Source: Klebsormidium nitens (Eukaryota; Plantae; Klebsormidiophyceae). From it: DNA of 64,000 bases. Position 1 is the stretch's first letter. Every line of letters begins with the position of its first letter. The notes below the pieces were generated by a model that saw only the letters and a list, made by a program, of their open reading frames with translations, did no database searches and was not told the DNA's origin. The position numbers were made by a program, and so were the translations under genes. The stretch spans positions 62,001 through 126,000 of the forward strand of contig DF237094.1 of the NCBI GenBank assembly GCA_000708835.1, in the 5' to 3' direction. Below, piece after piece: positions 25,454 through 48,500 of the stretch.

Positions 25454-26506
25454 ATGGCTTCCGTTGCAATGCCTTTGAAGACAGGCTGCCGGGCCTGGCT
25501 GCCCAGCCACAATCCTTGCAGGCACGGTGGTGGCGCTTCCGTGGTTGTGGAAAGTGCGCCGCACGGGCTCGCTCTTGTCCCAGCAGGCACTTGCTTATCT
25601 CAGCAACTTCCTTTTCAAAGTCTGTTAAATAGCTCCAGCCGATTCAGTGTGCGAATTGTGACATGTCGGAAGTCTGCTAGAACTGAAGCAAGGGCAGGCA
25701 AAGAGCGGCTGTTGCCGAAAAGAGCACCACAGGGCGATGCACAGTCATTTCCTGAAAGCACAGCGGACAGTGGTACAGAGAGAGAAAGCACCCAGCGTAT
25801 AGCGCCGCCCCCTTCAAGCGGGGTGGTTGACTCCAATAATGTTGTGAAGACCTGCACACAATGCAAACGTTCAAAGGTGTTCGTCGATTTTGAGAAGACG
25901 GTGGTGACAGTGGACGGGCGGACCGATGAATGCCGGGCTTGCTTGGCGGTGGTGAGGGCACAGCGGGCGAGGAAAGCTCTGCATCATCTCGCTTTGAGTG
26001 TGGAGGAGTCGTGGGAGCGGGCCAAGAGGTGTACTAAGTGCGGGCTCGTGAAGGAGTTCCGCGACTTCAGCCGGCGCGTGAGGAACAAGGACGGGACGTA
26101 TGGGTGTTGCAGGGCATGTCACTCTGATATCATTGTGCGCGCTCGCAGACAAGGGGGGCCGCATAGCCCGACAGACGAACCGCAGCGGTGTAGTTTATGC
26201 CTTGAAGTTAAAGAGGCGGACCACTTCTTCCCCGACGGAGGCCAGCTCACTGGGAGGAAGTCTGTCTGCAAGACTTGCTTTAGCGGGCAAAAGGCAGAGC
26301 AATATCAAACGGCTAAGGAAGTGCAGATTCACGTCTGGAAGGCGACTCGGCGTTGCTGGACGTGTCAGCAAGAAAAGCCTCGGTCTGAGTTTTACAGACG
26401 GCCGCTCAGTATTGAGGGGCTGTCCAGCAACTGCATCGCGTGTCTGAGAATCTATGAGAAGACCCGTCACGAAATGGGGAAGGAGAGAGGGCCTCTGGAC
26501 GGCTGA
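25454..26506 (+). CDS. Intronless 4x CX2C-X22-CX2C zinc-ribbon repeat protein, copy 3, intact (350 aa) with a transit-peptide-like N-terminus
   Basis: ATG-to-TGA ORF. Repeats: KTCTQC..ECRAC, KRCTKC..CCRAC, QRCSLC..VCKTC, RRCWTC..NCIAC, each with 22 residues between the CxxC pairs. The N-terminal ~70 aa are rich in Ser/Ala/Arg and nearly free of acidic residues. Confidence 0.85.
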   Translation: MASVAMPLKTGCRAWLPSHNPCRHGGGASVVVESAPHGLALVPAGTCLSQQLPFQSLLNSSSRFSVRIVTCRKSARTEARAGKERLLPKRAPQGDAQSFPESTADSGTERESTQRIAPPPSSGVVDSNNVVKTCTQCKRSKVFVDFEKTVVTVDGRTDECRACLAVVRAQRARKALHHLALSVEESWERAKRCTKCGLVKEFRDFSRRVRNKDGTYGCCRACHSDIIVRARRQGGPHSPTDEPQRCSLCLEVKEADHFFPDGGQLTGRKSVCKTCFSGQKAEQYQTAKEVQIHVWKATRRCWTCQQEKPRSEFYRRPLSIEGLSSNCIACLRIYEKTRHEMGKERGPLDG

Positions 26507-27499
26507 TTCGGCAGGTGGTTACATGGGTTGACGCCCTCGCTCTATCTAGAGGAGCTCTTTTTAACGGCGAGAGGTCCAATCAGGGAGCAAACAGGGTAAG
26601 CACGTTACTTGGCCGCTTGAGTCTTCCCTGATGTGGATCTGAAGTCGTTGGAAGGATGCTGAAGCTACTGGGTAGAAGCATCCTAAGTGAGGGTGCCTCT
26701 ATGCTGTATCTGGACACTACTTGAAAGTCGGGTCAGTTCTGGCAGAATCAAAAGAGCTTTGTGCACATCCCCAATGTACTCCCCTTTCCTTCTCCTCTTT
26801 GTGTGCTAAGCAGCATCCAAAAGCAAGAGTTCCAAGTGTTCTGAATATTGGGGGATATTTTGCGAGAGGTGGGGTCACTTTAGAAAGCATCCTACAGCAG
26901 ACTATTTAAGTTCTGAAAGACAGCGCTGGGGCTGTTGTTCGATACACACAGGGAGGCTCTTTTGGGGCAGCTATAGGTCATTTTCTTGCTTGCTTTCAGC
27001 AGGTATTGTGCATATAACAAGATGTGTGAGATAGCCCTTGTAAGATCACATTTGCGGTATCAGCGTGGCCTCAAAATGGTAGTTTTGAGACTGACTCTGA
27101 AACAGAAGTCGTGAACAGAGTCTTTGTGAGAACCAGAAGGTTTTGGCCGAAGGGCATTGAGGATCAGCCTCTTAATGGAAAAGCTGCCAGCCGGAGACAC
27201 GAGCAATTTCATTTTCAGAGAGTAGAAACACATTTGATCAGCAGTAAGATGAAGATGATGGCTTTGTTTGCAGGTCGCTTTTACTTGTCCGCGCTTCCGC
27301 GCGGCTTGCATACGCTTTAACCTGCACTGAGTCCACATCCTTTCCTTCTTCGGGAGCTGAGGACTTGCGGTGGTAAGTGATCAGAACTGTGTGAGTACAA
27401 GTTTTCCTCATGCTGCTAACTGTTTCCTTGACTGCTGATCAGTGTGTTGCGTTGCCAAAGCTGGCTCAAATTCAGGAGGACGTCAGCATGACTTCGACA

Positions 27500-28342
27500 G
27501 AGATTTTAAACGGTCCTCTGAAATGGTTGTCCGTACCACAAGTCTTGATTGGCGATTTCGCTCAGATGCTGATGAACGCAGGAGCAGACGCCTTCAGTCA
27601 GCTGCGGATATATTGTCCAGTGGACTCTTCCTTCGTTAGTCGGTCTCTCTCGGTTTTGACGTTTGTGAAGGTTGGGTTAGATGCTATTGAGTGGTTGATT
27701 GCGAAGCGTTTGGCAGAGACAATCGCTCCCTGGTAATGATGCACGTTGAAGTAGTGATCAAGTTGTGGGGTCGAAGTGCCGCACTTGTGGCCGTTCAAAA
27801 GCACAATCGAATCGGTGGAAGCGGTCTTGGTGAAAGAATGGATCAGGTCATCAGCAGTTCAAAGCCCCCGAAAATGTTTCATTTGTTAATGAGTAGAGTC
27901 GCTTCGTTGCATCTGGTGAAAGTCGGAAGTTGTATGACATCAAGGAATGACTTGACTTTGCAGGCTGTTACAAGCACACATCGTGAGACCGTTGAGAGTG
28001 CACATTCGCCAAAGGACGGGTCGTAAGCAGACGGAGGATGCAAAATCCACTCTGACAACTTTTTAATGAAACCGTACTAAGCTTGGCAACCAAGGGCTCC
28101 CGGGCATGGGGTTGGGTTGGATAATTGCTATTAAACTCGCTGATGTTGTGGTATGCATCCGATTGAAATGAGACTGGCTGCCAATGAGTTATAGCGTTCC
28201 AAGCACGACAGTCGTAGAAATCGACGGATTCAGTGTTTGACGTGGGCCGCCCAGGCAATTGCATGACAAGTATAACCCTCCCATACACCCCAGCTTGGAG
28301 AGATTCTTTATTATTGTCAATCATTCGCATTTCAATAACCAA
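27500..28342 (-). pseudogene. Degraded intronless ORF remnant, possibly a transposase C-terminus
   Basis: Protein-like stretches occur in successive frames (LQAGVYGRVILVMQLPG...; YGFIKKLSEWILHPPSAYDP...; HYFNVHHYQGAIV) broken by stops and frameshifts. The resemblance to DNA-transposase 'YG-x-[IV]' motifs is weak. Confidence 0.2.
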
Positions 28343-29028: not shown

Positions 29029-32000
29029 TTACTGATACTGGGGAGCAAGCTCTCCTTCCCGCACAATATAATCTTCCTCAGGAAGAGGCTTTCCATCAAA
29101 CCAGCACTCGAGAATCTTCTTGGTCCCGGCAGCGTAGCGAGCCTGCATGCCAACAAAGCCGAATTGTTGCATAAAAGGGCTCGTCAAAAGCATTCCCTCG
29201 ATTCCCTCGACAAACAACGACGAAACATTATAGTACGCGCATCGTTGTGATTCAAAAGCAGGTTCGCAAGAAGGCCTCACAATGAGGGAATCCGGGGTAA
29301 CGTGATCGGAACTCGCATTGAATGCCAGCGAATATTACAACAGCCAACCAGCCCAGACTTTTGTCCAGATGACGCCTGTCGAGGCAAAGAGCCAAGTGAC
29401 CGGACACTGGCTAATGGCAGATGGACACATACTCTGTGAAAGAGAGCATTAAGTGAGCCAGGGCTTCGAAGACTGCCGGCTTTGTAAATGTTCAGAAGAA
29501 GCACATAAGCGGAGTGTCTCATGAGATGCCACGTGGCATCGCACACTGACCTGAGCATCGAGCGTAGTTCCCGACAGATGGGGGGTCATCGCGTGGTTAG
29601 GCATGTGGCGCCAAGGGTGGTCTGCAAACGAGACGGTAAGCTGTGAAAAGCGAATCAGGCGAAATTGACTGTCTCGTTGGAAAGAACAGATGCTTCTTTG
29701 GCCCAAGCGAGCGGATTGACAAGAACGGAAAACGTGCGTCAGAAGCATCATGGCCACTGTTGAACCGAGATTGCAGATAAACGGAAAGAGAGCCGTTCAT
29801 CGGACAGAAAGAGCAAGCAGAAGAAGCCTGGTGTATTTTGACTAGAAGATGACGGCCTTCCGGGGCCCCACGAAAATGGACAAACGAGTGAGACGTCCCC
29901 AGCACAAGCTCGATTGGGAATCAACCAGGCTTGCTGCAGAAGGAATACCTTGAAGTCGACAAAGAGTCGGCGTCCTTTTTAAACGCGAGGTGTTCCGAGT
30001 GCTCGCAGGAAGTCAAACAACGTCAAGTGTTTGAATCTGAGAGGGCGTCAGGGCTCTTGGCATGCTTGATAGTTTCGCCGGCAATTCCAAAAGCGGGCCT
30101 TTGAAAAAGAGGGAGGACGGCGCAATGTCTCTTTCTGAACATCCGACTAGAAAGGTGCAAACAGTATCGGTTCTAGGAGTTCAGTTGACCACCTAAACGG
30201 TACCTGAACGGTACGCACCTTTGGGCGGCGGCTGGGGATACCAGACGTCCCCACCGTAGCCGTTGAGCTGGCCGCTCTCGAGCGCCTCCACGATCGCCTC
30301 GCGGTTCACGATTTCTGCGCGCGCGTTATTGATCAGGTACGCGCCCTTCTTCATCTTGGCCAGCTGCTCCTTGCCGATCATGTGCCTGTGCGAGGAACTG
30401 ACCGCGATCAGACTCGGCTGATCTAATAGTAATTTCAAGTTTTGCAGGTCTCGGAGTTTTACGACTTGTATGCGTCTTTGCTTAGCCGCGAATGAGGGGT
30501 ACCGGAAACGCAGCACTCAGTTGCTAACCACATTCGAGAATTCAATTTGTTTCTGCAGTCCAGTTCTTGTCATGGCGGATAGAAGATCAGGTCGAGCGAT
30601 GACGTCAATTCTCTCCGGTACGCTTTCAGACCAGCAAAGAGATCGCCAATCGACGCGAGATCAGCCGCTCATTGGGACGTAGGAAGTTAAAGGGAAGACA
30701 CCAACTCAGCATCCAATATCGTTGTTCAATGACGCATGTTCAGAGCAGTTGCAACAGAGCGCGAAGAGGTTTGAGCTACATTGACATTCAATCCGCTGCA
30801 TCCGCTGCAATGCAGACCTTAAGAGTATCGGCCATAAGTGCGGGATTTTACAATTCCGGACGGGTAAAGCAGAAACGTCACTCCGGACCTAATGAGGCAG
30901 TCCACCGAGCACGCCAGGACTTCACCACTTCTGTTTCCGGATTGTTTGAACACTATTCCGGACACCCCGTGTCAACTGACCGACTGAATTGGTTAGGTCC
31001 GGAAAAAGGTTTTTGCTCTGCCCGTCCTAAATCGCGATTTCCGGAGTTAGGGCCGATACTCTTATAACCTTACCTGGTCTTGTCGGTGAGGGGCACGTTA
31101 ATTGACACGACGTCGCACTTGCTGAGGAAGGTGTCGAGGTCCTTCTCAAACGTAGCGCCGAACTTCTCGATGTTCTCGTTCTGGTGGCGCCCGTAGTACA
31201 GCAGGTTGCAGTTCCAGCTCTGCGGTTGAGAAGGCCAAAAAGGGCAGATAAAAAAAAAAATTCTTGATCTGCCCCGTGACTTGGTCAGCAAAGCAAATGT
31301 ATGAGAGACGGGGAAAGCTTTTTAATGGAATCGTACGAACGTGGTTAAAGACATCCGTTCTGTAGCGCGCACCGCACAGCTGGCCCCGGTTCAGAAGGAA
31401 GATATAATCTGCACAGTAATTTTTGCCCACTCGGAAGTCAAAGGAAGAGAAGCTCGAAGCAAATGGCAAGGGTTCAAAAGATGAAGCGAAGCTAGAGACC
31501 GATTCTTGCCCGACATGAACAAAACCGGCTCTCATGTTTTGATCCAAGACGCTCTTGCAAACTGTCAGTGGTTCCCTGTCTTTTCCCGTTCTTCCTCCAC
31601 CTTCGCAAATGCAAAGATTGCAGAAACGAACACTATCTCGCCTTCGCCAATTCGGGAACGCAAGATTCCGAACACGAAATCTCACCTGCAGGCGCTTCAT
31701 CATTTCCTGGCCGATCCTGCCGGCGCCCAGCGTGCCCACGGTCTTACGCTCCAGGTCGTACGCCTTGTAAGCGACCGCGGCCACGTTCCACTCGTCGTGG
31801 ATGATCTGGAAGCGAGCACGAAAAGTCAGGGCATTTAATGTCAGACCCTTACCAAATCAAAAGAGTCAATCCTCCAAATCGGGTCGAACGATCGGCATGG
31901 TGCTGTGAGCTAAGGATTGTCTGTAGCGGAGAGGTTTCAATGGCTGTCAAACTGCGCACAATCGTACAAGAAACATTTGCTTAGACCAGCGCATGAGCAT

Positions 32001-34708
32001 CCTTGACGACTGACCAGGTGCGAATTGATACGAGCAGGAACAGAGTGGCACAGCAAAATGATCGGTAAGCAACAGCAACAAAAGGTCAGGTCAGCACGGC
32101 AAATACGTCACTCGCCGCCTCGCACCTATCACGCCGAACTCACGCACTCGTCGAGCAGTAAAAGTTTGTAGAGGTGCCTTAGTGAAAACCTTCCGGAAAT
32201 TGCGGCCTCAAGATCTTCTCATCTCATCAGAAAGAAACTAGATTCTCTCAGCAGAGTACCAATGCTGCCAGTGGTCAGAAACTCAATCGGAAAGCGAAGA
32301 ACCTCGAGCAACAAAGCATGGGGTCAAATTCAGGATTTGGCCGACCGAAAGTCCAGTGACCTCGAAGTGAGGAGGCAAAGAAGTTGATTTCGAACGTATC
32401 TCAAGACGACAAGGTTTGTTCCCAAGAAGCAAGAAACCAGAACGATTCGCACTGCCCGAAATGTAAGAAAAACCGTGGAGCTTTACGAAGCCTGCAAAAT
32501 TTCAGTTTGAGAAAGCCAGCTTTTACGGCTCACCTGCATGTAGCCGGGGATGAAGTTGCGAATCAGGATCAGGATCCGCATGATCTCGTCCTCTGCCACA
32601 CTCGTGACGTTGCTCCCTGCACGGAAAGACGGCGGGATATGATTCGTCAACGGCGGTGTCGTGAGACTATCCAAGCGCAATGCGGATGTCCGTCGTTGAG
32701 CGAAAGAGCCGCACAAACTTTTATCACATAGAATCATCTGAGGTGGACCCGAAGATAATGGGTGGTCGCCGCAACAGATTGACACTTCGCATTCCTCAAG
32801 AGACTCCCCGAGAGCAAGGAGTCTTGTCACGGTGTACTGCTGCACTTCCCGGATTTGTCTAGTCTGATCACAATTTCGCCTGACGTCACCTCACCGGCAA
32901 TCTCGGCGACCGTCATGCCCTTTTCGGCTGCCGCGTGCAGGTCGATGTGGTCGCTGCCCACCCCCGCGGTGATGATGAGCTTCAGTTTTTTGGCCTTCTG
33001 GATCCGCTCCCTGGTCATGTATGCCGGGTGGAAGGGCGTCGTGATCAGGATGTCGATCGTGGGCAGCTGCTTCTCCAGCTCTGTGGAGACGACAAGATTC
33101 GGAATGTCGATGGCGTTGAGAACGAAATCGCATAGGAATCCATGAGACCGTTGACTTCTGCCAACTGCTACGATAGCAGAAAACTTTACGCGAGCATTAA
33201 GAGTTTGCGAGGGTTTCCATAAGGGAGTCCGTTCTCGGCAACGGCTTTTGCGCTTCGACCGAAAAAGAGTCCACTGAGAAACTCCGCCAGACAAGTGTCA
33301 CCTTCTGGCAGTGACGATGTACTGATCAGCAACTTAGAATTGTGAAGGTGACCAGTCAAAACCCGTTTATAAACGGTTGGATGCATGCCAATGAACTGGA
33401 GACTTCCCGAGTGGTCGTGGTAGAATCCCTTCATTCCACTTACCTAGGTTCCACGCTTGCAATCCGTTCGCCACCTGACAAAAATCATCTTGGCAAGAGC
33501 TTGAATATCGAGATACAACCGAGAGACCTTGCCCTACCCGACAATCAGGCCAACTAAGTGCATTGGTCTTCGAAGACGTACTTTGCATGAAAAATGATAT
33601 GGGCAGAACATGCAAGACGCTTATATTGTAGCGCCCCATCGAGCTTTCACGATCCTAGGAACAGCAGCAAGAGGGACTAACTGCCGCAGAGTGTGACAAT
33701 ATTCTCTGGGGTGTTTCGCTTGGTTTAAAAGGGGTCGCCGCACAGCAATGACAGCAACTACGAACTTTGGAACAGGTTTGGAAGCAGACGACGGCATGCA
33801 CAAGAAAGTTCATGCACAACTCCTCACCAGAATCGGGTCCATCCTTGTCGTCTGTCACAATGTACTCGTGTCCCAGTTTCTCCAGCCACTCTCTCAGCCC
33901 GAGTCCATTCTCAGCGCAGGCCAGGAACTGCTTGTTTTTGGCATACTCCCCAGCCTTGTATAGGACTGCCAAAATCTTTTGCTTTCCCTGCGCGGGTGAA
34001 GAGCGACAGGATTGTTTCGTATGCAAAGCGCACCTGATGGCGATCCAGGCCATTTCCGTAAACTTCATTCAACGATCTACATTGAGGTTGCTGAGTGCAG
34101 GTTGGATAAAAATCAAGGTGAGCTTTAGGTTATATTGCAGACAACCTTCCGGTTCCCTAAGCATGCACGCAAGGTCTTGATCTCAAGGCCTTCGTGAGAT
34201 TCGAGGTTTACAGAAAGCACACATTTCTGCACTACAAAAACGTCATTGTAATCAATTTGAACATTGAAACGAAGCAGTGGCACCGAATCTTACTGCATGT
34301 GATTTATTGAGCTCTTTCGCGCGTCCAGATCCACGTTCTGCTTACTTCATAAGAGGTCCGTTCTAAGAAGTGCACCAGCCATTTCCTTCAGTTCAAGTCA
34401 GACACCAAGGTATGCCGGAATTCATAGAATCACTCTGCATGAATGCAGAAGTGCCAGTGACCGTAATAAAGCTCTTCAAACAAAACCGGGACCTGCTTAT
34501 CTAAAAGACAAGTCTGTGACGAAGTCGCGACATAAGGCTGCATGAGCTCATCAATGCTGGTCAGAAGCTGCAGTGAATGTATAATCATTTTTACGGTCAA
34601 GAAGAGAAGTAAGATCGAGAAATGAATTAATGCATCTCAGTATTTCAAAAACGCCTCATAACATGATAGCTGCAAACAACTGACCTCGTGACGCTCGTTC
34701 CCTTCCAT
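29029..34708 (-). CDS. FDH: Formate dehydrogenase, plant-type D-2-hydroxyacid dehydrogenase family, copy A (9 exons)
   Basis: Exons read at GT/AG sites: 34708-34685, 33987-33828, 33080-32895, 32616-32534, 31805-31686, 31219-31074, 30385-30219, 29621-29551, 29142-29029. Motifs: [77 protein letters not shown]. Confidence 0.97.
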
Positions 34709-35561
34709 GTTCTTACTGTCGCTTTGTGCTCGCTGGACGGATTGAGCACTCCTCTTGCTTGTATTAGGGACTTCTGTTTGAAAAGCTTTCCGCTCTTCTA
34801 GCTGTCTGAGTTCCTTCGAGCTCTCTCGCAAATTTGAAGGTCATTCAATCTGAGCGTAGTGTCTTTCTGATCTCGCAACTTGGGGCCTTGAAGCGCTGCA
34901 ACACCGTTTGATCGACCTTTGAAAGCCGGCAGACAGCAGGTACCAGCTCAGCTGTGAGTCTTGCGCTCAGAAGACAATCTCGTGTGCTGGACAAGGTTCC
35001 TGCGACTTCGAGCGGCGAGAATGGAGAGGGGAAGTCATCTTGTAGCTCTACAAAGCTTTCACTCCAATCTGCGGCGCTCCTCTTTCCTGAAGCCCTTCGA
35101 ATTTTGCTGAGGTCAGCCGTTGCTCATGCAGCCCTGCATGGACGCCTGCCGCCTGAACTTTCGAATCAGAGGAAGCAGAGGGCCGAGACGACTTGCGAGT
35201 TGCATGCTAGTCTTACTTTTGGCGCCCGGCCTGAAAGGTTTTAAGGTTCTGATGTTCGCAATAGGGCTTGAGAACGGAGCACAGAACTAACTTGGCACGT
35301 AAGCGGTTTTCGCGGCTCCACGGGTGCGTGCATGAATTGTCCAACTCAGGAGAATTTGTCCGCATGCAACTGATTTCGAAGCCGCGGCCGCGTAGCGCAG
35401 GTTTGAGCGGTCGCGCCACCCCAATATCGACATCCGTCAGCGCATGCGCTTGCATAATCAACATGGGCAGCTGAAAACAATCATGATGTCTATGAGTCAG
35501 GAGAACCATAGTGCAACAATTATTTGGTGCCGCCGAAAAATCTACCGATTAATCAATTGGC

Positions 35562-35760
35562 ACTCCGATAACTTTCGTGTGACCTAAGAGCCGTGTGACC
35601 TAAGATAGGCACCCGGGGGACGGGTGGGGTTGGTATGGTGGTTAGGGTGGGTTGGGGTGCGGGGCGGGTGATTCTTTGGGTTAGGGTTTTCGTTTGAAGT
35701 GCCCGGGTAACTCGTACCTTAGGTCACACGCCCGTTAGGTCACACGAGAGTTACCGGTAT
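35562..35760. mobile_element. 199-bp MITE with ~45-bp imperfect TIRs and a 9-bp TSD (Mutator-like TSD length)
   Basis: Left end actCCGATAACTTTCGTGTGACCTAAGAGCCGTGTGACCTAAGAT. Reverse complement of the right end: ataCCGGTAACTCTCGTGTGACCTAACGGGCGTGTGACCTAAGGT. Direct repeat TCAATTGGC at 35553-35561 and 35761-35769. No coding capacity. Confidence 0.88.
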
Positions 35761-36019
35761 TCAATTGGCAGTTCCGACCGACGGTGATGGATTGAGCAAA
35801 AAACCAACAATTACAAAATATTACGCCCTCACAATATTACGCCCTCGTTATCTCTCTACTATTTGACGTAGAGACAGTGAGAGAGCGTCGGACCGCTTGT
35901 GCCAATTGTTTGTTCAAAAATTTGTCCTGCAACACTTGTTTGTTGTATTGCAACACTTTGTTGAGAACGCCGATTCCCAATTGTCCCTGCTATTTTACAC
36001 TCAATTGCCTTCACATAAA

Positions 36020-39000
36020 TTACTGGTACTGGGAAGCAAGCTCTCCTTCCCTCACAATGTAATCCTCTTCAGGAAGAGGCTTCCCATCAAACCAGCACTC
36101 AAGAATCTTCTTGGTGCCGTCAGCATAGCGAGCCTGGAGCACAAAAAAGTCAGGTTACTTCTAACAAAAACTCCTTACTAAGGAAGAAACGTGAAACTAA
36201 GTTCGCGCGTCCTTGTTATACAGAAGCACTACACCTTTCTACGAAGGCCTTAACTGACATCCAAACGTGTTACAAATTCATCGGATTCCCGCAACAAAAA
36301 TGGAAGGCAAACAGCTCAGTAGTCCGTCAGAACGATGCCTGCTGAAGCAACAAACCTGAATCGAGACTATTCAAGTCTCAGCTAGATATAATCTTTCCAA
36401 TAGGAGCAAGTGAGCCATGGCATCGAAGAATGCCGGCTTTATAAAATGTACAAAAGACAGAAATACAAGGAGTGTCTCGTAAGGTGCCACGTGGCAATAT
36501 TCACTGACCTGAGCATCGAGCGTGGTTCCCGACAGATGGGGAGTCATGGCGTGGTTCGGCATGTGGCGCCAAGGGTGGTCTGCAGAAGCAACGATAAGCC
36601 GTCAGAAACGAAGGACGCAACAGTGTCTTCCTCCTCGGAAAGAGGAATAGAAGCTTCTTCGGACCAAGGCTTTTTCGGACCAAGAATTCTTCGGATTGAG
36701 GCTTCTTCGGACCGAGGCTTCTTCGGACAGAGGCTTCTTCGGACCAAGCGAGCAGATCCAGAGAAACTTTCGAACGTGCGTCAGAATACATCATGGCCAC
36801 TCTGTAACCGGGATTGCAGGCGTCCGCAACGGAATGAGGTTGATCAGCCATACAATCTAGAAAATCAGCGAGGGACGCTTAATGTGTTCAACCAGTCACA
36901 GTTGACGGTCTCCCCAAGTCCCAGAGAAAATGACACGCGGGATAGAGTATCCCCCGACAAGCACATTCTGGTCGATCACCAACCGGAACTATTCTGACTC
37001 GCCGGAACAAACTCGTTTGCACGCTTCAGCCCAGACTAACCGTAAAGTAAAGAATCAAGAGTCGACGCGACGTTGAAGCCGGAAGTACTCTTTATAAGCG
37101 GGATGTTTGTACTCGTAAGCACTTCAAGATTCAAGCAACCTCAAACAACCTTCCCGGGGTACGGACGGCACAGTTTCTGCCTAACCCGCCAGCGAACTCT
37201 CGTGCAAACCTTATAATTTCTCATACAAACCTTAGTGAAGAACGAGCGACGCGTCCCTTCAGACTTTCTGTTTGGACGCTGCACAAAGCAGCAATTATGA
37301 GTTTCTTGACAAGCCAATTACCGGTACGTACCTTTCCCCGGCGGCTGGGGGTACCAGACGTCCCCGCCGTAGCCATTGAGCTGGCCGCTCTCGAGCGCCT
37401 CGCCAATCGCCTCGCGGACCACGATGTCGCCGCGCGCGTTGTTTACCAAGTACGCGCCCTTCTTCATCTTGGACAGCTGCTCCTTGCCGATCATACCTCT
37501 GCACACGGGAAATGATGACGTCAGTGAGCCAAAAATCGTCAACCGGTACTGTGTTCGGGACAACTCTGCGTCATTTTCGGCACTCCTTCGCACCATAAAA
37601 CGAGACGCTACACGATTACGGAGGAAATCTCGACGCCCAACTAGGGTACATCGCCTGTCATGTTCCCCATTCTGTGATCCTAAACCCATTCCCCTGACCT
37701 TGTTCTGCTTCACTTCGTCACCTCGAATCAGCTACTCCTCGCACAATACCCCTTTCACGCCCCGACGTTTGATATTTTGTGAGAGGGCCCCAAGACAAGG
37801 TCCGCGTTTTTCTCATTAAATGATGCCAAGGTGTAAGGAAGCTTTGCACAACCGACGGAAGATTCCTTTGAACCCCAAAGACCATTGAGATTTTCCGGCA
37901 TTTTGTACTTTTTGTATCTTAATGATCTGTCAGTAGGACGTCAAATCCGGTCAACATGTGTGATTGACAAAAATCACGATGCAACGACCCGCATCAGTTT
38001 CGAAATCAAACGCGACTCATGTCTCCATTTTAGAATACCGTCGCGCTAGGAAAGGTTATAGTCTGTACCTGGTCTTGTCGGTGAGAGGCACGTTGATCGA
38101 TACAACGTCGCACTTGCTGAGGAAGGTGTCAAGGTCCTTCTCCCACACAGCCCCAAACTTCTCAATCTTCTCGTTCTGGTGGCGCGCGTAGTAAAGCAGA
38201 TTCAGGTCCCAGTTCTGCGGACGAACAGAGTGAGTCAGACACCAGAAAGAAGGATTGACCACTTACAAGACCAATGATAATCCTAAAGGAAGGAGGTAAA
38301 ATTTGAAGATACTCGTATTGGCTACGAAACGACCAATCAATGCACATCGAGTGGAGGGGCGTAACTTAGCAGGGACAGATTACGTGGTCGCAAAGCTCGA
38401 CCATTTCAATCAAATGGACCGTTTCATTCATTGCTCTTCCTCATCCTTCGCTCATTAAACGCTATCAATCTTAGTCGCGGAAAGAAAGGATATTAAGCTC
38501 ACCTGCAAGCGCTTCATCATTTCCTGGCCGATGCTACCGGCGCCCAGCGTACCCACGGTCTTGTGCTCCAGGTCGTACGCCTTGTGAGCAACAGCGGCGA
38601 CGTTCCAGTCGTCGTGAATGACCTGTAGTAAAGAGCGCGGTCTTCTGAGTTTTCATAGTTCGTACGACGCTTCTGTTGTGTCTACCCCGCTACGTCTTCT
38701 TTGCGGCTTTCGACACACAGAAATCTGAAGGATAATTGAAGCAACCGATTGCGCAGACAAGGACCCAGAACTTCTGGGTTTGGCAAAGAGTCCGGCTTCT
38801 GTTCGTAGAAAAGCAGCAAACAACGTTCTAAAAATGCAGACGTCCAATCAGTGAGAACACAGATCATTTGCAGGAAAGTTGATACAATCATGAGAGATTT
38901 TGGAAGCGTCATCTAAGGTTCACAAGTACAGAAGATGAACAAAACAGTCTCAAACGGAGTCGTCGTCCAATCAAAAGAAGAATCGGCCTTTGAAAGAATG

Positions 39001-41871
39001 CCCCAAGCAATCAGGAGACCTCTCCCCGAGAATGGAAGGGCAACAGCGCCATGGCAGAGTTTAGATCAACGAGAAGTCCAAATGACACGGAGATGGTTTG
39101 GACTCACCTGCTGGTATCCAGGAATGAAGTTGCGAATCAGGATCAGGATTCTCATAATCTCATCCTCTGCTACGCTGGTCACGTTGCTCTCTGCGCGGAG
39201 AAATACGGGCACATATGAACACAGAAAAACGTCGAAAAAACGCGTCGTTTAATATTCTCTAGTGCTCAATTCACATGCGTCGACATTGAGCTTGCTTCGT
39301 CATTCTGTTGGTTCAGCCGGTTTTGTCCGCTGTAGCAGCTTTGTCATTACCGGGTACATATCGACACCGCCTTCGATATGCAGACCTAAGCGCCTCGGAC
39401 ACTGACCGAAACCAGAGAATAGAAATAACAGCAGTCAAAATTTCAAGTATGCGGGATTTCGGTGTATTTGAGGAGAGGAAGATAAGAACAGAGGCTTGTA
39501 CCCACTTGAAACCTCAACGGGTTTTCTCACGGAAGCTCAAAAAATCGTTCGAGAAGGCTCAATGAAACAAGAATGCACGATCGCGAGAAGACGACAGCAA
39601 GAGGGCCAGTCACGACTAGAACGGCAAAAACTTTGATTTACGCTTCCGACGCTTCGATCGCGAAGAAACAGAATAAGGTACTTACTGGCAATCTCAGTGA
39701 CGGTCATGCCTGCTTCGGCTGCCGCGTGCAGGTCAATGTGATCGCTGCCCACGCCGGCAGTGATGATGAGCTTCAGATTCTTGGCCTTCTGGATCCGCTC
39801 CTTGGACATGTACGCCGGGTGGAACGGCGTCGTGATCAGAATGTCGATCGTTGGCAGCTGCTTCTCCAACTCTGTCAATGCGACAAGGGTCGATGATGAG
39901 AAATGTTACCGCAAGAACATAATTGTCAAGGCCTCTACACATGTCAATCCTCAGCAGCTGGTTTAGTGGCCCTGGGACTTCTGAAAGATAAAAGAGATAA
40001 AAGCCTGCCGCCCAAGATCGCATCTGGGGTACTACAACGCGGAGTGTCCGCCATGCATTGGCAGCTTTTTATGCAGCTCCACACAAGCGTCAGGACTCTA
40101 CGAATCAGGGAGAACGTGGTTGGACCTGGTTTGGACAATGCTTTGTTGCGATTCAAGCGACAGCCTCCACCCCCCCCTCTCCTCTCAGTCAACGTCGCTG
40201 ACGTCCGAACTTTCGGGAACGTGAGGAAAGTTCAAAGTTTGGGCGGTTGGGGCGATCATACCACGCCCCAAAACAACACGTTAAGAATGTGCATCACACG
40301 TTTAAAAAGCAAGTCGAGTCGCCGCCGACATATGCAAATGATCACCAGACCACCACCATAGCAATTTCACGCAAAACTCTTTCGTCTTCTGGGTCAAGAC
40401 TCTGTTTCAAGATTCAAATCGTAGACTCAGCCCCTGGCTTACACAACAGTTGATTGAAACTAGTGTGAAACTAGTGGACAATTCCAGTTATCGGGTTTTT
40501 CCATCAAGATTGAAAGACACATGCAAGAAACCTTTTGATGCCCCCAGACGTCCATCCTTTCTTGCTACAACAGTTGCTGTCATAAACTAAAACCCAGCCA
40601 GCAACGCGGCTTTTTGTCACGAAGGATGTTTCCTATTTGTGAACAACTCTGAAAAGCTGTCACGAAGGATGTTTTCTATGTGTGAATAGCACGGAAGTGG
40701 CAGAAACAGATGCATGTTTCAGCGAAAGGCCTCACCAGAGTCTGGTCCCTCCTTATCATCTGTCACAATGAACTCATGTCCTTGTTCCTTAAGCCATTCC
40801 TTCACCCCAAGGCCGTTCTCAGCGCAGGCCAGAAACTTCTTGTTATCAGCGTACTCCCCAGCCTTGTACAGGACTGCCAGGATCTTGTGCTTTCCCTGTT
40901 CACAAGAGGGCAAACGAATTCAGCTCGTATGCAAAGCGCAGCGGATGACGATCCAAAGGTCAATTTATTCCGACTACGTTCGAAAATTCTGGGAAGAGAC
41001 TGTTTTCGACTCTTCAGTGGGTATGACCAGATAAGTCATGAATTCTGCTGGAACGGGAGTATCACATATGTTGTAACGTCGTTGGCGAATCTCAAGATTC
41101 GGAGTGAAATTTGAGAACGTGGACCTCAGCTGTCAGTTATACTTTCAAAGCAGACTAGCAATTAGGACAGCTCTTACATGACCTACTACTAACTGTGATA
41201 ATCGGATGTACAAATGACTAACATTTGTCTCTGCATGTGATCAAACGTTGCAATAGTCCTACGTCCAGGTCGATCCCCAGCTTCTTCTGTACAAGTCCGT
41301 TTCTGAGTAGGTGGCGGAGCCTTGTTGATCACTTCAGTTCAGCTTCCTCAATGATGTGCATGAGGCTGCATGAGCTCACCAAGACAAAGGCTCGTTGCAG
41401 AATCCTTATCTGTTGTGATTCAGAGAATGTGAGCGCAACTTCACAAAGATATATGTACCAATCTGGTGAAGTGGACTGGGTATTGTACTATCAAAGCTGC
41501 ATATTGCTCACCTCATGACGCTCTTTCCCGCCCATTCTGTCACTGTCGTTTTGAGCTCGCGGAACGATTGCAACTCTTTTTCTGCTGACAGACCCTGTGC
41601 CCGAAGTTGCTCTGCCTCCTTCTAAACGGCTGAATACCTCCGAGGTCTCTCGCAAACCTGAAGGTCGTCGGAGTTGAGCCGACTGTCTTTGCGATTCCGC
41701 AACTCGGGGCCTTGCAACGCTGCAACACTTTGTTCGACCAGTATTTGAAAGCCGGCAGACAGGTGATGTAAGCTCAGCTGAATCTTTTGTGCTCGAAGGG
41801 AATCTCGAGCTGCTTCTGTGATGGACGAAGTTCCTGAAACTCTGAGCGGCGAGAACGGAGATGGAAGTCAT
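36020..41871 (-). CDS. FDH: Formate dehydrogenase copy B (9 exons) with a long N-terminal transit-peptide-like extension
   Basis: Exons: 41871-41512, 40895-40736, 39871-39686, 39190-39108, 38622-38503, 38214-38069, 37498-37332, 36579-36509, 36133-36020. Same intron positions and catalytic motifs as copy A (NNARG, YPQP, TPHLSG). Exon 1 reads [24 protein letters not shown]...MGGKERHE and ends at a GTGAG donor in phase with exon 2. Confidence 0.96.
36651..36746. repeat. Intronic minisatellite, 6 x 16 bp (AGGCTTCTTCGGACCA consensus)
   Basis: Six adjacent near-identical units. The equivalent intron of FDH copy A has a single unit at ~29690-29705. Confidence 0.9.
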
Positions 41872-42500: not shown

Positions 42501-45500
42501 TTGCCCCTCCTTTACAAATTCTTGGCCCCTACTATGGCTCAAGCAAAGGTGAGCGGCCAGGCTTGCTCCTCCTCTTGCTGCCTCTTCAGGCAGCCCCTCT
42601 CGAAACAACATGGTCTTCTAGAAAACACTTTTTGTGTGGGCGTGAATTATCTAAGAGCCCCACGTCTGCTGGGGCTTTGCAGAACTCTCGGCAAAGACTG
42701 CCGCATCTGTGTTGATTCTTGGGTTGCGCCAGTGTCTGTCAGGGCGTATTCTTCTAGTACAGTGTCTCAGGCCACAAGTGGCGGAGGGGTAGAAGTCAGC
42801 ATTTTGAACAAGAAGGACAGGGGTTTAGGGGAATCACCCCTCGCTGTAGAAAGTTCTCCGAACGAGGCAGTCACTGGGTCAGCCGGAGCTGAGCACGAGC
42901 CTTCTGGAAAGACCGAAGTAGATTATGAGGCCGCTCTGAACGACGTTTTAGCTCGTCTATCAGACGACTCTGGCGCTCCCTTCAGTCCAGACTGGCAGGC
43001 CGGGGTTTGGTTAGCACCAAAAACCAGGGTCAAGGCTTGGTCAAAAAATGGTGTGGAAGGGACCAGGCGGTGGCGGAGGCCGGGGACTGCTGAACAGGAG
43101 CGAGGCGCTGACTCAGCGCAGCAGGAATTGCTGAGCAAGAATGGGGAACTAGAGGCGGTTTCAGACGGAGCGGAGGAACTAGGGGAGGGGAGGGTTGGGC
43201 AGACCATAAGCGGTGAGGTTGGGACGAGCGGGTCTGAGGAAGAGGGTGGCGAATCAGAGCCTGCAGGGAGAGTAGATAAGACACGGGACGTGTGGATAAG
43301 GCCGGGGTCTACTCTTGCGCACAGCCGGCTGCCGGAGCAGATGGCTGCAGCAAAAGCTATACCTAGAAAGGCACAGCTTAAGGGATCCTCAAGCGGTGAA
43401 ATAGAGAACGGGAGTTCGGGCTCTTTGAATTCTGAGTTGCAGGATGGGGTTGCTAGTGTTGTTTTTGAGGCCAGTCGGACACCGGACAGTGGACGGAGGG
43501 CGGCGGTGCGAGGGCCACCAGTGGTAAAAAGTGGAGAAGGACGGTTTAAGGTGGAAAGTTCGAATGCGTTGCTTAGGATTGGTGGCACGAATCCATTGCG
43601 GGAAGTAGAAACAGCGCCCTTACGGAAAGAGAGTAGGATAAGTAATTTGGACAGTGGCGCCATCGATGCTGCAAAGTCTACCGAAGGGGAAGAGTTGGTG
43701 AAACTAGGCGCGGCAGATGGTGCGAAGGTGTCCGAAGAGGAGCAGGCCCTGCAACTAGGTATGGAGGCGCTGCAGGCGACCAATGAGTGGCTTCGCACGG
43801 GCGCAAAGGCGCCCGAAGCAGGCCTGGAACGCAGTGTGAACCAGCGGATAAAGCGAACCCCCCGGATGTTTAATGTCCAGGGGAGGGAGCAGCAGGGGGG
43901 GATCAGAGTAAGGCCCCGGATACCGGGCAGAAGACTGAGCGAGTCTAGGGAAGAATTGAGCAAAAGTGAGTCGGGAGTGGGGGAGTTGGAGGGGGCAAGG
44001 AAACTAGAGCGGACGGAAAGTTCGCCGTTGGAAGCTGCGAAGGAGGTGGTCGTGAAGGTCGCGTCAGCAGCCGCCATTGCGGCAGGGCAGGTCAGCATCT
44101 TTCCTGTGCCTTTTTAAATTTCTGAAAATCGCAATACTTGACAGCTGCACACCTATTAAGAACCATCTTGCAGGCTTGGTCTTTTGGTCCATCTTTGTTG
44201 AGCAGCTGGCAACAGTGTTGCTCTTTCAAACCTCTTTGATCCTTGAAAAGATGGTTGTTTGGGAAAACAGTGAGGTTGACTACAGACAATGGGGCTTGCA
44301 GAGCAGAGAGCAGAGAACAAGTCTCGTCGACGAGTGCTTCAGAGAGGGCTAGTAGCTACCTGGTACTGAGGTGTTGATGGTCAGAGTGGAAGGTTTTTCA
44401 GTCTGCATCATGTTGGTTTGGAATGATGCGTTCTTGTGACATTTGTGCCTTTGAAAGTAGTCCCCAAGTTAAGAGCATGCCCATGTCGACTGCCGTGATG
44501 GTCGATAAATAAAGCAAATGACTGAGGCATGCTGAAGGAAACTCTGATCTAAAGTTGCGACATGGGTAGCAACACCAGCCTTTGCAGAATTTACGCCCCC
44601 TCTCCCCCTTGTGCATCTATCTAGTGGGGGGAGTGACAAGCAGCAATCTCTTCATGTGCAGATCAAAACGCCTGCTTTCCCTATGGGAACGCCGCCGAAG
44701 AAGCTCAAGATCAACCTGGATCTAGACCTCTACCGAGCTCGGAATCTTGTGTTCAAGCGTCAATTTACGCAGGCTGAGAACATCTTTTACAAGGTAATCA
44801 CTGATCCTTAGGATATGCCGTTTTCAAATCGGTGATGCTTACTGACGATCTGTTTGGTGATAGTGACACAAAAGAAGGTCTGGTGCAGCTTTTCAGACGG
44901 AAGGAAGGTTGCGCACACGAAATGAAGGCCAAGGCACAAGGTATTGGGGAATCAGACCCTGGACTTAGACCGAAAAGCTCAGAGTCTTGGGCATGGTTGT
45001 CATTGCTTGCGGAGTCGAGACTCTTTGCGTACTGGAAAGCAAAAGAAGCTTTGCATTGTTCTCGTCGGGGGAGCAAGGGGCACGCTGAGGGCTAATTGTA
45101 GTTGGAGACCTGAAAGAGGTGGAGACCTGAAAGAGGTGGAGACCTTCAGGAATGGAGACCTTCATGCATCTCGGTACTGTAAAATTATCACCTCACATTC
45201 TGTTGGCTCCTGTTGACTCTCTAGCATCGAGTTGTGGACCCCATTTATCGTTCAATCTGGTGTGTCACTCGCTTTCTCCACAGCATGGGCGTCGTTGTCG
45301 CATCAGCGTTGCCATAAACATGCATCGGTTTTCTAGATGTGCTTTTTGAAGCAGCTCCAGTCAACGCAAGTAACCCAACCTGGTTGAGGTTCTGCCCACT
45401 AACACTTTCCTGTCTTACGTCTGCACAGTGCATCAAGGACTTCCCAGAAGACGGCCGGGCGTACTGCCAGCTGGCAAAGCTTCTGGAGCGGCGTGGCGAA

Positions 45501-48500
45501 CTAGACACGGCGCGCGAGATGTACGAGAGCGCCGAGGCGGCGGCCAAGGGGGAGAACGCCTATGTGTGGCAGGTGCGACTATCTCGGAACTCGTGGTAGA
45601 GGTCTAGCAAAACTGGCTCGCACAATTTCATGCCCCTGGCATCCTTTACAGTGTCTTGCTGAGAACATTCTGGGGTTAGCTTGACGAGCCTTCTGATTCG
45701 GCCAGTGCTTCTGACGTGTCCTCTGGATGCCATTCCTCTGGCCCGCTATGCTCCTTGCATGTGCCTTTCTGTGCCAAGGCCGCTCTTTTAAACTGAGCTC
45801 CGTTTTGACAAGACGCTTTTCCACAAGGGATTGCTTTCTTTGAACGCTGTGAGGCTCAACCCGTTGCCGCTTGGGCCGCTTTTGTGTTGCGCCTTTTGTG
45901 TAGTTCCCTTTCTAGGCGCTTGCTGACCGTGCTATTCGTATGTTTGGGATATTTCCGGACCGGAAATACCCTCAAAGTTTCTGGAGGCGGCTTACAGCTG
46001 CAAATTGTAGGACGTGGACGTCTTTCTAAGTTGGTAACGAGTTGAGATCCCTTTCTAGTGCGGTTGAGCATTTGAAGGTCAAAGTTGTAGACTAATTCTT
46101 TTGTGCGGTTTATTCTCATCCCGTATACATCCAATTTACGTTGCGCTAATCATGAACGTTTTAGCTCATCATGAACGGAAAACCTCGTCGAGAACAGGAT
46201 GTACGCCGGTCTGGGCAGCTTGGTGCAAAACACTTCAATTGAGCAGCTTGATTTGGAATCTTTGGGTACATCGGCGTCTATGATTGACGCCCGTTGTTTT
46301 GTAGATACGAAATTGAAACGCAACCCTCCAACGCTCACAGATGTACGCCGTTCTGGAGGAGCGCGCGGGGAACCTGAGCAAGGCGCGCAAGCTGTTTGAC
46401 GCCGCTCTAGTTGTGGACAAGGAGCACGCGGCCGCGTGGCACGGGTGGGGGAAGCTGGAGAAGCGGGACGGGAACCTGGTCAAGGCCAAGAGCCTGTTCC
46501 TGCGGGGGCTCAAGAACTGCCCCACCAATGCGTGAGTGCTTTTTCGTTCTCCACTCCTATTTTTGAGCGACGAGTGTTGGGGATCTGAAGGCTGCAAATC
46601 GGAGACGGCAATCGTGATCAAGGCGAAGAGTGTTTTCCTGCGGGGGCTGAAGAATTGCCCCACCAATGCGTGAGTTCCAACGGCACTTTTCTCCTCCTCT
46701 CTGAGCCAATGTCGATCCTTTGGAAACGCACTACCGAGAGATGGCAACCTGTCAAGGCCAAGACCCATTTTCTGTGAGGGCTCAAGAACTGTCCCATCAG
46801 TGATTTGTCGTCGCTTTTCTCTGCTTCTTCGAGTCACAGTAATGGGTGTTCAGAAAGGCCTGAATGGAGGGCCGCAATGGTACGGGAAGAAGGATCGGCT
46901 ATTGAGCCACTCGATCAAGCATCACTTGAAAGGTTGGATTATTTTGGGGATAACTCCAGTACGAGCTTGCACTCATAATTGAAAAGTCCGGAGTACCGCT
47001 CCAGGGGCGCGAGACTTCGAAACCGACACGACGGTAACGTGAAGGCCTTGCTCCGCTCTGATACGTTCCCAGTACCTTTTGCAATCACCTTTGTCAGGAG
47101 CTTGCGGTGACTGTGAAAGGAGCGGGGAATCCGCCCAGTCGCACGAATACTTCGATAAGAGCGAGTCACGAATTACTTTTGCGGTATCATCTCCGCTCTC
47201 TTACGTTCCCTTTCCTCCTTGTCATACGTTTCCCTTTATTGTCTGCAGGTACCTCCATCAAGAGCTCGCGCTGATCGAGAAAGAGGCTGGAAACGCCGCC
47301 CAGGCGCGTGAGTACTTCGAGAAGGGCACGGGGTACGCGCCGCGGTCGGCGGCACTCTGGCAGGCGTGGGCGCTGCTCGAGGCCGAGTGCGGGAACGCAG
47401 CGAAAGCAAGGGAGTTGTTTCAAAAGGCCAAGTAAGTTTCATAGCGTCTTATTGCTGTGTTTTGGAGGCCACTAGTCTTTCTTTCATCTCTTTTTCAGTC
47501 CTTGTGAGAAGCGGAGAGGTGGTTAAAGTCCTGACAGAGTCGAGATGGCGGGTCACTTTTCTTCGTCCTGCGAGCACTATCATTCACAGTCGTCCTTTTT
47601 CTTGCTCTTGTCCAGCTGACAACAAGCTGGACCAAGTAAGGTAAGCGGTTAGTTCTGCAGTTGACGTGAAATGCTGACTCGTGAATTCATCCTGATGCTG
47701 ACTTTCGATGCTAAATCTTGACCCTGACTTTCTATATTCTGATTCTGCAGGGAGGTAAGCCCGCGCAGCGGTCCCGTCTACCTGGCCTGGGCGCTGTTTG
47801 AGGCGGAGTGCGGCGAAACGAAGGCGGCCCTCGAGCTGTTCGAAACGGGCCTGGCGTATCGTCCACGAGACGTAGTTCTCATGCAGGTAAGATTACGTAG
47901 CTCGCTTAGAGTCGCCGACAATGCCCTGTAGTTCAGAGCTTTGTTATCTGTACTTTCAGTGGGTATTTCGACGACATCGATCGAGAGAGTCCTTTCGACT
48001 TGCAAGACGACTGGCTTTGTCCGCGGATACCTTCAGACCTTTCCGTATCCAAGCTCTTTACAGAATAAGTCGCAGGTCTTCGCAAGCTCCTTCTTGAGAC
48101 GAGCGACCAGGGCGACCAGCCTAGCTGGCCGAATCAATTACCAAATTTCAGAGATCAGACATTGAAACGCACTACTGAGTTGCAGGTTCTGCGCTGGCTT
48201 CTGGTACGACGAGGGTGCTCACACCCGGCTGTTGTTTTGGCGAGCGGCGGCTCCTCTGAACCAGTAAACTGGGCTGGCTTTAAGGGAACGCCAATTTTCT
48301 TTCGAATCTACTATGATCTCAAGTTCTGTTAGGACTTTGTTGCAGGCCTTTGCGCTGTTACTATACGACGAGGGCGACCCTGCCCGGGTATAGCTGTTGC
48401 GGCGAGCCACATTTGGTTCCACGTCACCAGCTCAGCTGGCCACCTTTTGTTTCTCAGAGTTCATTGATTCCATGAACCTTTTTTGATGGTTTTACTCTTG

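Follow-up and report, generated by a model that had tools for sequence, protein, structure and literature searches.

Tandem plant-type formate dehydrogenases of Klebsormidium nitens lack the NAD+-selecting aspartate and are candidate natural NADP+-accepting enzymes

The window analysed here is a 64,000-nucleotide stretch of the genome of the alga Klebsormidium nitens (assembly GCA_000708835.1, contig DF237094.1, positions 62,001 to 126,000 of the forward strand), and all coordinates refer to this stretch. It contains two formate dehydrogenase (FDH) genes, copy A and copy B, which are arranged head-to-tail on the minus strand and have nine exons apiece. Neither copy encodes the aspartate that characterises NAD+-specific FDHs. 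The gene models were built manually from reading frames and splice signals. The lengths of corresponding exons match except for those of exon 1, and all introns of both copies have GT-AG borders. The genes and their exons, listed from high to low coordinates, are as follows:

29029..34708, minus strand: FDH copy A, manual model with 9 exons and an open coding sequence of 1071 nt that specifies 356 residues
34708-34685, 33987-33828, 33080-32895, 32616-32534, 31805-31686, 31219-31074, 30385-30219, 29621-29551, 29142-29029, minus strand: exons of copy A (stop included)
36020..41871, minus strand: FDH copy B, 9 exons, 468 residues from the first ATG or 356 residues from an internal ATG at 41535
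41871-41512, 40895-40736, 39871-39686, 39190-39108, 38622-38503, 38214-38069, 37498-37332, 36579-36509, 36133-36020, minus strand: exons of copy B

The annotation of GCA_000708835.1 contains two adjacent 356-residue genes with spans of 5516 bp and 5680 bp, which equal the spans of our models of copy B from the internal ATG and of copy A from its first ATG, respectively. The NCBI protein "formate dehydrogenase [Klebsormidium nitens]" (P0270) matches copy B with 100% identity over residues 113-468 of the latter. It was reached with a stop-free reading frame of 236 codons that includes exon 5, with only the exon portion scored, and was itself the query of a further homolog search. The searches did not return a database entry for copy A, although its gene is annotated. 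Family and structure tests were done on this copy B protein only, and copy A was analysed by script-based sequence comparison. Copy B scored 462 bits against the NCBIfam FDH equivalog NF005750, which has a cut-off of 329, and no other family passed its own cut-off. The AlphaFold model of copy B (predicted local distance difference test score 90, predicted template modelling score 0.86) has the two-domain fold of FDHs: the top 38 matching PDB entries are all FDHs with Z-scores of 41-47.5, and the next families follow at about 34. The best matches, with Z-scores of 45-47.5 and root-mean-square deviations (rmsd) of 1.4-1.9, are likewise all FDHs. The proteins encoded by copies A and B are 88.5% identical and align without gaps. 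The motifs SN, NNAR, PQP and TPH, which a previous interpretation made from the DNA letters alone (the sequence-only reading) had described as intact, are present in both spliced proteins. Residues P77, F78, N126, R262, D286, Q291 and H310 are invariant in an alignment of 50 sequences and are present in both copies; they correspond to the catalytic and formate-binding sites P97, F98, N146, R284, D308, Q313 and H332 of the Pseudomonas enzyme (PseFDH). Both genes encode plant-type metal-free FDHs of the D-2-hydroxyacid dehydrogenase superfamily with intact catalytic residues.

The feature that sets the two enzymes apart from NAD+-specific FDHs is residue 201, whose codons were located by reverse complementation and alignment:

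31190..31192, minus strand: codon GGG for Gly201 of copy A, where NAD+-specific FDHs have the selecting Asp
38185..38187, minus strand: codon GCG for Ala201 of copy B (numbered 313 in the 468-residue form), at the same position

In the HMMER alignment with solved FDHs, residue 201 lies opposite the Asp of the Arabidopsis FDH (LLYHDR, 3JTM/3N7U) and of the Physcomitrium FDH (MLYYDR, 7ARZ), and opposite the Ala of the Novosphingobium FDH (HYYARH, 7YA3). It also aligns with the Asp of bacterial FDHs. In the model of copy B, the strand formed by residues 173-177 is followed by a glycine-rich turn, a helix of residues 181-190 and a strand of residues 196-200, with residue 201 immediately after. Directly behind strand βB, residue 201 occupies in the model the classical place of the NAD-selecting acidic residue. 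The Asp that NAD+-specific FDHs carry at the end of this strand is replaced by Gly in copy A and by Ala in copy B. The claim of the sequence-only reading that both paralogs lack the Asp is borne out by the model and by the alignment with Arabidopsis, Physcomitrium and bacterial FDHs. The site reads Y-G-R-H in copy A and Y-A-R-H in copy B, so both have the non-acidic residue followed by Arg that is found in NADP+-accepting FDHs (G/A201-R202-H203). Arg202, which was proposed earlier to be capable of binding phosphate, is kept in both copies, and the corresponding Arg222 of PseFDH forms a salt bridge with the 2'-phosphate (bioRxiv 10.1101/2020.04.02.022350). Both copies also have Gly178, with which GxGxxG begins, and Val233, residues of the NADP+ type at the positions of A198 and Cys255 of PseFDH, although these two alone do not discriminate: Gly178 occurs in most plant FDHs, and Val is also present in the Asp-type FDH of Coccomyxa. 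Judged by sequence, the K. nitens pair lacks the defining feature of NAD+-specific FDHs and has the features of natural and engineered FDHs that accept NADP+.

The absence of the Asp is rare and is shared with a defined set of relatives. A comparison of about 200 full-length homologs shows Asp at this column in 192 and Ala in the copy B protein plus six further cluster representatives; copy A is the only one with Gly. The other plant-type sequences compared have Asp without exception (192/192). The Ala sequences belong to seven named Sphagnum species, Ceratodon purpureus, Spirogloea muscicola, a Klebsormidium-like species known from a metatranscriptome, one Logan transcript and one EukProt transcript, and the string Y-Y-A-R-H is invariant across them. 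All Asp-less sequences have in common Y200, R202, H203, F222, S/T230, V/L/I233, K238 and P293, with Ala at residue 201 (Gly in copy A). Asp-type sequences mostly have H200, D201, L/V/I203, M222, V230, T/M233 and A293. Sphagnum and Ceratodon each also keep a canonical FDH with Asp, encoded on a different chromosome, in the cluster that holds the Physcomitrium 7ARZ enzyme. Mosses have thus retained the Ala type as a paralog, and it is no peculiarity of a single alga. The comparison indicates that Asp-less FDHs are an old group that includes mosses, Spirogloea and Klebsormidium. Loss of the Asp in an algal lineage, as proposed earlier, thus holds for K. nitens but is not restricted to algae, since mosses share it with Spirogloea. 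The metatranscriptome contig of the Klebsormidium-like organism, a separate species with 81% identity, also has Ala, encoded by GCA. Ala is the older state, from which the Gly of copy A is derived through one base change.

Prokaryotic FDHs at the 80 best loci contain Asp in 70 cases, Glu in four, Asn in three and His in three, and neither Ala nor Gly occurs at the column among them. The three His look like a misalignment by one column, with Asp in the next. The three Asn belong to metagenome-assembled genomes of Nitrososphaeraceae archaea (L005, L029 and L066), with YYNLPR or YYNNFR at the site, which is another natural non-acidic variant.

A maximum-likelihood tree was built without the trait column. 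Copies A and B are sisters in this tree (support 99/97) and adjoin the Klebsormidium-like transcripts, and the Asp-type Coccomyxa sequences are sister to the Klebsormidium group (99/94). The non-Asp state requires at least two changes on the tree. Because Asp-type Coccomyxa groups with Klebsormidium, a single clade of non-Asp sequences, and with it a single origin, is marginally rejected (approximately unbiased test, p 0.036). One branch, moderately supported (70/92), separates the Asp-less sequences plus Coccomyxa from the rest of the tree. The Asp was either lost once, with a reversal in Coccomyxa, or lost two to three times, and both scenarios argue for selection. The two Coccomyxa subellipsoidea proteins (P0281 and P0295, with YYDRHQ and YFDREQ) come from a chlorophyte and lie inside the Asp-less streptophyte group, against the species tree; a reversal, a transfer or an artefact are possible explanations of this placement.

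The function of the missing residue is well established. Asp221 of PseFDH makes a hydrogen bond to the 2'-OH of adenosine and repels the phosphate that NADP+ carries at the 2' position (bioRxiv 10.1101/2020.04.02.022350), and an Asp in the βB-αD loop marks preference for NADH in the 2-hydroxyacid dehydrogenase superfamily (PMC6303947). The literature agrees here with the repelling role that the sequence-only reading ascribed to the Asp, and also with its statement that replacing this residue is the standard way to engineer use of NADP+ (PMC5817062). Binding of NADP+ is further aided by A198G and by an aliphatic residue at Cys255, and the NADP+-dependent FDHs of Burkholderia contain the motif GxGxxGx17Q (bioRxiv 10.1101/2020.04.02.022350). 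On balance, both K. nitens enzymes probably accept NADP+ to a degree similar to or higher than NAD+, and would then be dual-specificity or NADP+-preferring FDHs. The loss of the acidic residue from the adenosine-ribose pocket would remove the feature that enforces the use of NAD+ in both working enzymes. The Ala of copy B and the Gly of copy A behind strand βB would offer no carboxylate to repel the 2'-phosphate, and the conserved Arg202 and His203 could bind it. The Ala state would have been inherited from the old streptophyte FDH group common to mosses and Spirogloea, and the Gly of copy A would have arisen later, after a Klebsormidium-specific tandem duplication. Residue 201, Gly178 and Val233 represent three of the four changes in an engineered NADP+-dependent Mycobacterium enzyme, so oxidation of formate with NADP+ would be expected. 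The ratios of NADP to NAD specificity tabulated for engineered FDHs are 16.6 for M. vaccae C145S/A198G/D221Q/C255V, 17.1 for C. boidinii D195Q/Y196R/Q197N and 2.3 for S. cerevisiae D196A/Y197R (PMC5817062).

The closest natural counterpart of the Klebsormidium site is the FDH of Novosphingobium sp. AP12, which has Y-A-R-H as in copy B and was solved with NADP and azide (7YA3) and with NAD and azide (7YA4). It has the same fold as copy B (Z-score 45.1, rmsd 1.7 over 346 residues), and contains Ala at the position of PseFDH Cys255, where the Klebsormidium enzymes have Val; both are small aliphatic residues. It differs in being a bacterial long form of 392 residues with a C-terminal extension, in its 49% identity, and in having Ala rather than Gly as the first residue of GxGxxG. 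No kinetics of the Novosphingobium enzyme were found in literature searches. Granulicella mallensis FDH2 D222A/Q223R, with F-A-R-H, was made to bind NADP+ and solved with NADP (6T9W); D222Q/Q223R and D222S/Q223R versions of FDH2 were engineered as well. The D222A/Q223R enzyme was created in the laboratory from a bacterial FDH with wild-type Asp-Gln, whereas the Klebsormidium state is natural and the Arg is the ancestral neighbour. The FDH of Burkholderia stabilis is natural and Asp-less, with Gly first in GxGxxG and an aliphatic side chain in place of Cys255, but it is bacterial and has Gln rather than Ala or Gly at the Asp site; it is reported to be 26-fold more efficient with NADP+ (PMC3347622; bioRxiv 10.1101/2020.04.02.022350). 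Of the two natural bacterial examples named by the sequence-only reading, B. stabilis lacks the Asp as claimed, but the claim does not hold for one of the Granulicella enzymes, FDH2 of G. mallensis, whose wild type has Asp222 (HYFDQH). The engineered S. cerevisiae FDH D196A/Y197R (Serov et al. 2002, tabulated in PMC5817062) is eukaryotic, has the same Ala-Arg pair and shifted its preference to NADP+. Its efficiency is very low, whereas the natural group had a long time to compensate.

Canonical plant FDHs provide the opposite reference. The enzymes of Arabidopsis (3N7U) and Physcomitrium (7ARZ) resemble copy B in identity (61-63%), fold (Z-scores 46.8-47.5), catalytic residues and the short plant-type C-terminus. 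Canonical plant mitochondrial FDHs differ in having Asp at the site, mostly Leu, Val or Ile instead of the His two residues on, and Thr or Met at the Cys255 position; the Physcomitrium enzyme itself has Asn at the position of His203 and Thr at that of Cys255. In assays, canonical plant FDHs are NAD+-specific, and their efficiency with NADP is 1e-4 to 1e-6 of that with NAD (PMC3347622). Almost all FDHs studied are highly NAD+-specific, the plant enzymes tabulated in a review of plant FDHs have very low efficiency with NADP+, and eukaryotic FDHs are treated as strictly NAD+-specific (PMC3347622). The natural NADP+-accepting FDHs recovered by our literature and PDB searches, from Burkholderia, Lactobacillus, Granulicella, Novosphingobium and Starkeya, are all bacterial. 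The literature searches found no paper on an Asp-less eukaryotic FDH or on the use of NADP+ by a eukaryotic FDH.

Several observations weigh against acceptance of NADP+ by the K. nitens enzymes. C. methylica FDH D195S remains NAD+-preferring with a ratio of 0.024, and yeast D196A/Y197R retained only about 2e-4 of the wild-type efficiency (both PMC5817062). Copy B lacks the invariant Arg of GxGRIG, so its binding of cofactors in general may be weakened. The model of copy B is ligand-free, and the contacts with the 2'-phosphate are derived from homologs. Published kinetics of Asp-less members of the plant group were not found in the literature searches. The enzymes could be physiologically dependent on NAD+, the loss of the Asp having only relaxed discrimination or lowered the affinity for NAD+, with no role for NADP(H). 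We regard this explanation as possible but less likely. A single replacement of the Asp may leave the preference for NAD+ in place, as in C. methylica D195S, and the Novosphingobium enzyme was crystallised with NAD as well (7YA4). An Asp-type FDH of K. nitens is absent from the 120 best homologs, which is weak negative evidence, and the Asp-less enzymes may be the only FDHs of this alga. The pair may then have to fill the usual NAD-linked role; a status as sole FDHs would also fit a dual-cofactor role. Against dependence on NAD+ alone, Ala, Arg and His at residues 201-203 are strictly conserved in mosses, Spirogloea and Klebsormidium (Gly in copy A), and the maintenance of the Ala type beside an Asp-type paralog in mosses argues for a selected, distinct property. 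Furthermore, NADP+ was favoured by engineered FDHs in which Arg follows a non-acidic residue (PMC5817062). Use of NADP+, with dual or NADP+-preferring specificity, is the explanation that we prefer.

Another explanation, which we consider improbable, is that copy B or both copies are catalytically impaired or becoming pseudogenes. It derives from substitutions at otherwise conserved positions, R181S and G124K in copy B and G263A and G241H in copy A. The first of these lies in the GxGxxG motif:

38533..38535, minus strand: codon AGC for Ser181 of copy B, within G-A-G-S-I-G; copy A has AGG (Arg)

Arg at residue 181 is invariant in all other sequences compared (about 200), including copy A and the other Asp-less relatives. 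The equivalent R201 of PseFDH is listed among the residues that bind the phosphodiester (pyrophosphate) (bioRxiv 10.1101/2020.04.02.022350), so the affinity of copy B for either cofactor may be reduced. The Lys at position 124 of copy B replaces a Gly that is 96% conserved, and G263A of copy A lies in NNARG. The alignment contains Tyr at position 124 in four sequences and His at position 241 in three. These counts are consistent with the residues of PseFDH, which we take to be Tyr and His at the two positions, respectively.

Decay is contradicted by the integrity of both genes, which have open frames and exclusively canonical splice sites. The comparison of the copies by the Nei-Gojobori method gave 0.065 nonsynonymous substitutions per nonsynonymous site (dN) and 0.54 synonymous substitutions per synonymous site (dS), a dN/dS of 0.12, and their introns are too diverged for a convincing alignment. 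Derived changes, polarised with the nearest outgroup, number 16 in copy A and 15 in copy B. The low dN/dS and the balanced numbers of derived changes indicate that neither copy is decaying, and the pseudogene explanation was rejected on these grounds. Expression evidence covers copy B only. In a published reverse-transcription quantitative PCR study of K. nitens, the gene "FDH" kfl00145_0170 served as a marker of stress and was induced by salt and by polyethylene glycol (PMC9643330). The primers for this gene in the supplement of that study match spliced copy B exactly and have one mismatch each to copy A, and the reported 112-bp product is obtained from copy B only when intron 6 is removed. 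The messenger RNA of copy B is therefore made, and spliced as modelled.

Sequencing or assembly errors in the codons at 31190-31192 and 38185-38187 are a negligible concern: although the window and the public protein both come from one assembly and are not independent witnesses to the codons, two copies with two different non-acidic codons, Ala in the transcript contig of a related species, and at least 20 moss and algal sequences from separate projects uphold the earlier judgement that an error is unlikely.

The copies differ at their N-termini, where copy B keeps a presequence and copy A lacks one:

41536..41871, minus strand: possible organelle presequence of copy B, a 112-residue N-terminal extension with many Ser/Thr and Arg and few acidic residues
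34709..35038, minus strand: presequence remnant of copy A, homologous to exon 1 of copy B (41512-41871), with several insertions or deletions and stops in all three frames

Because of the insertions, deletions and stops in the upstream stretch, translation of copy A can start only at the ATG at 34708. A homolog of the copy B presequence (MTSLSLLATQSLRNFVHH...) is encoded by the Klebsormidium-like JGI metatranscriptome contig L002 (positions 1-555), upstream of the called FDH open reading frame and in another frame, and its end is formed by the beginning of isoform P0343. The contig resembles a transcript in which the intron that separates the presequence from the mature part is still present. 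The extensions of Ceratodon, Spirogloea and some other Ala-type proteins are about 75-95 residues long, compared with about 40 in one mitochondrial FDH of a land plant. These observations suggest a possible plastid location. No Ala-type isoform was found among the fern and seed-plant sequences sampled. We speculate that streptophyte algae and mosses keep an old NADP+-linked, plastid-imported FDH beside the mitochondrial NAD+ enzyme, that it was possibly lost toward ferns and seed plants, and that copy A is a presequence-less cytosolic Gly version of it. The proposed import into plastids is based on the long N-terminal extensions of Ceratodon, Spirogloea and copy B, which are rich in Ser, Thr and Ala, and the scenario as a whole is tentative.

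If acceptance of NADP+ is correct, the Asp-less group of mosses and streptophyte algae would contain the first natural eukaryotic NADP+-dependent FDHs. These enzymes would be naturally optimised, short plant-type scaffolds for the regeneration of NADPH from formate, and would provide a link from formate to NADPH, possibly in plastids, that is missing from the FDHs of the ferns and seed plants sampled. The pairs of Ala-type and Asp-type paralogs in mosses are a ready natural experiment in how cofactor use switches.

Intron 7 of copy B contains six repeats of a 16-bp unit with 82% matches (window positions 36653-36748). In the public annotation, the tandem pair is flanked upstream of copy B by a gene for a 960-residue HAT/TPR protein (Syf1/crooked-neck-like; about 42534-50325, plus strand) and a Usp-domain gene (50474 onward, plus strand), and downstream of copy A by a small gene without recognised domains (about 26020-28066, plus strand).

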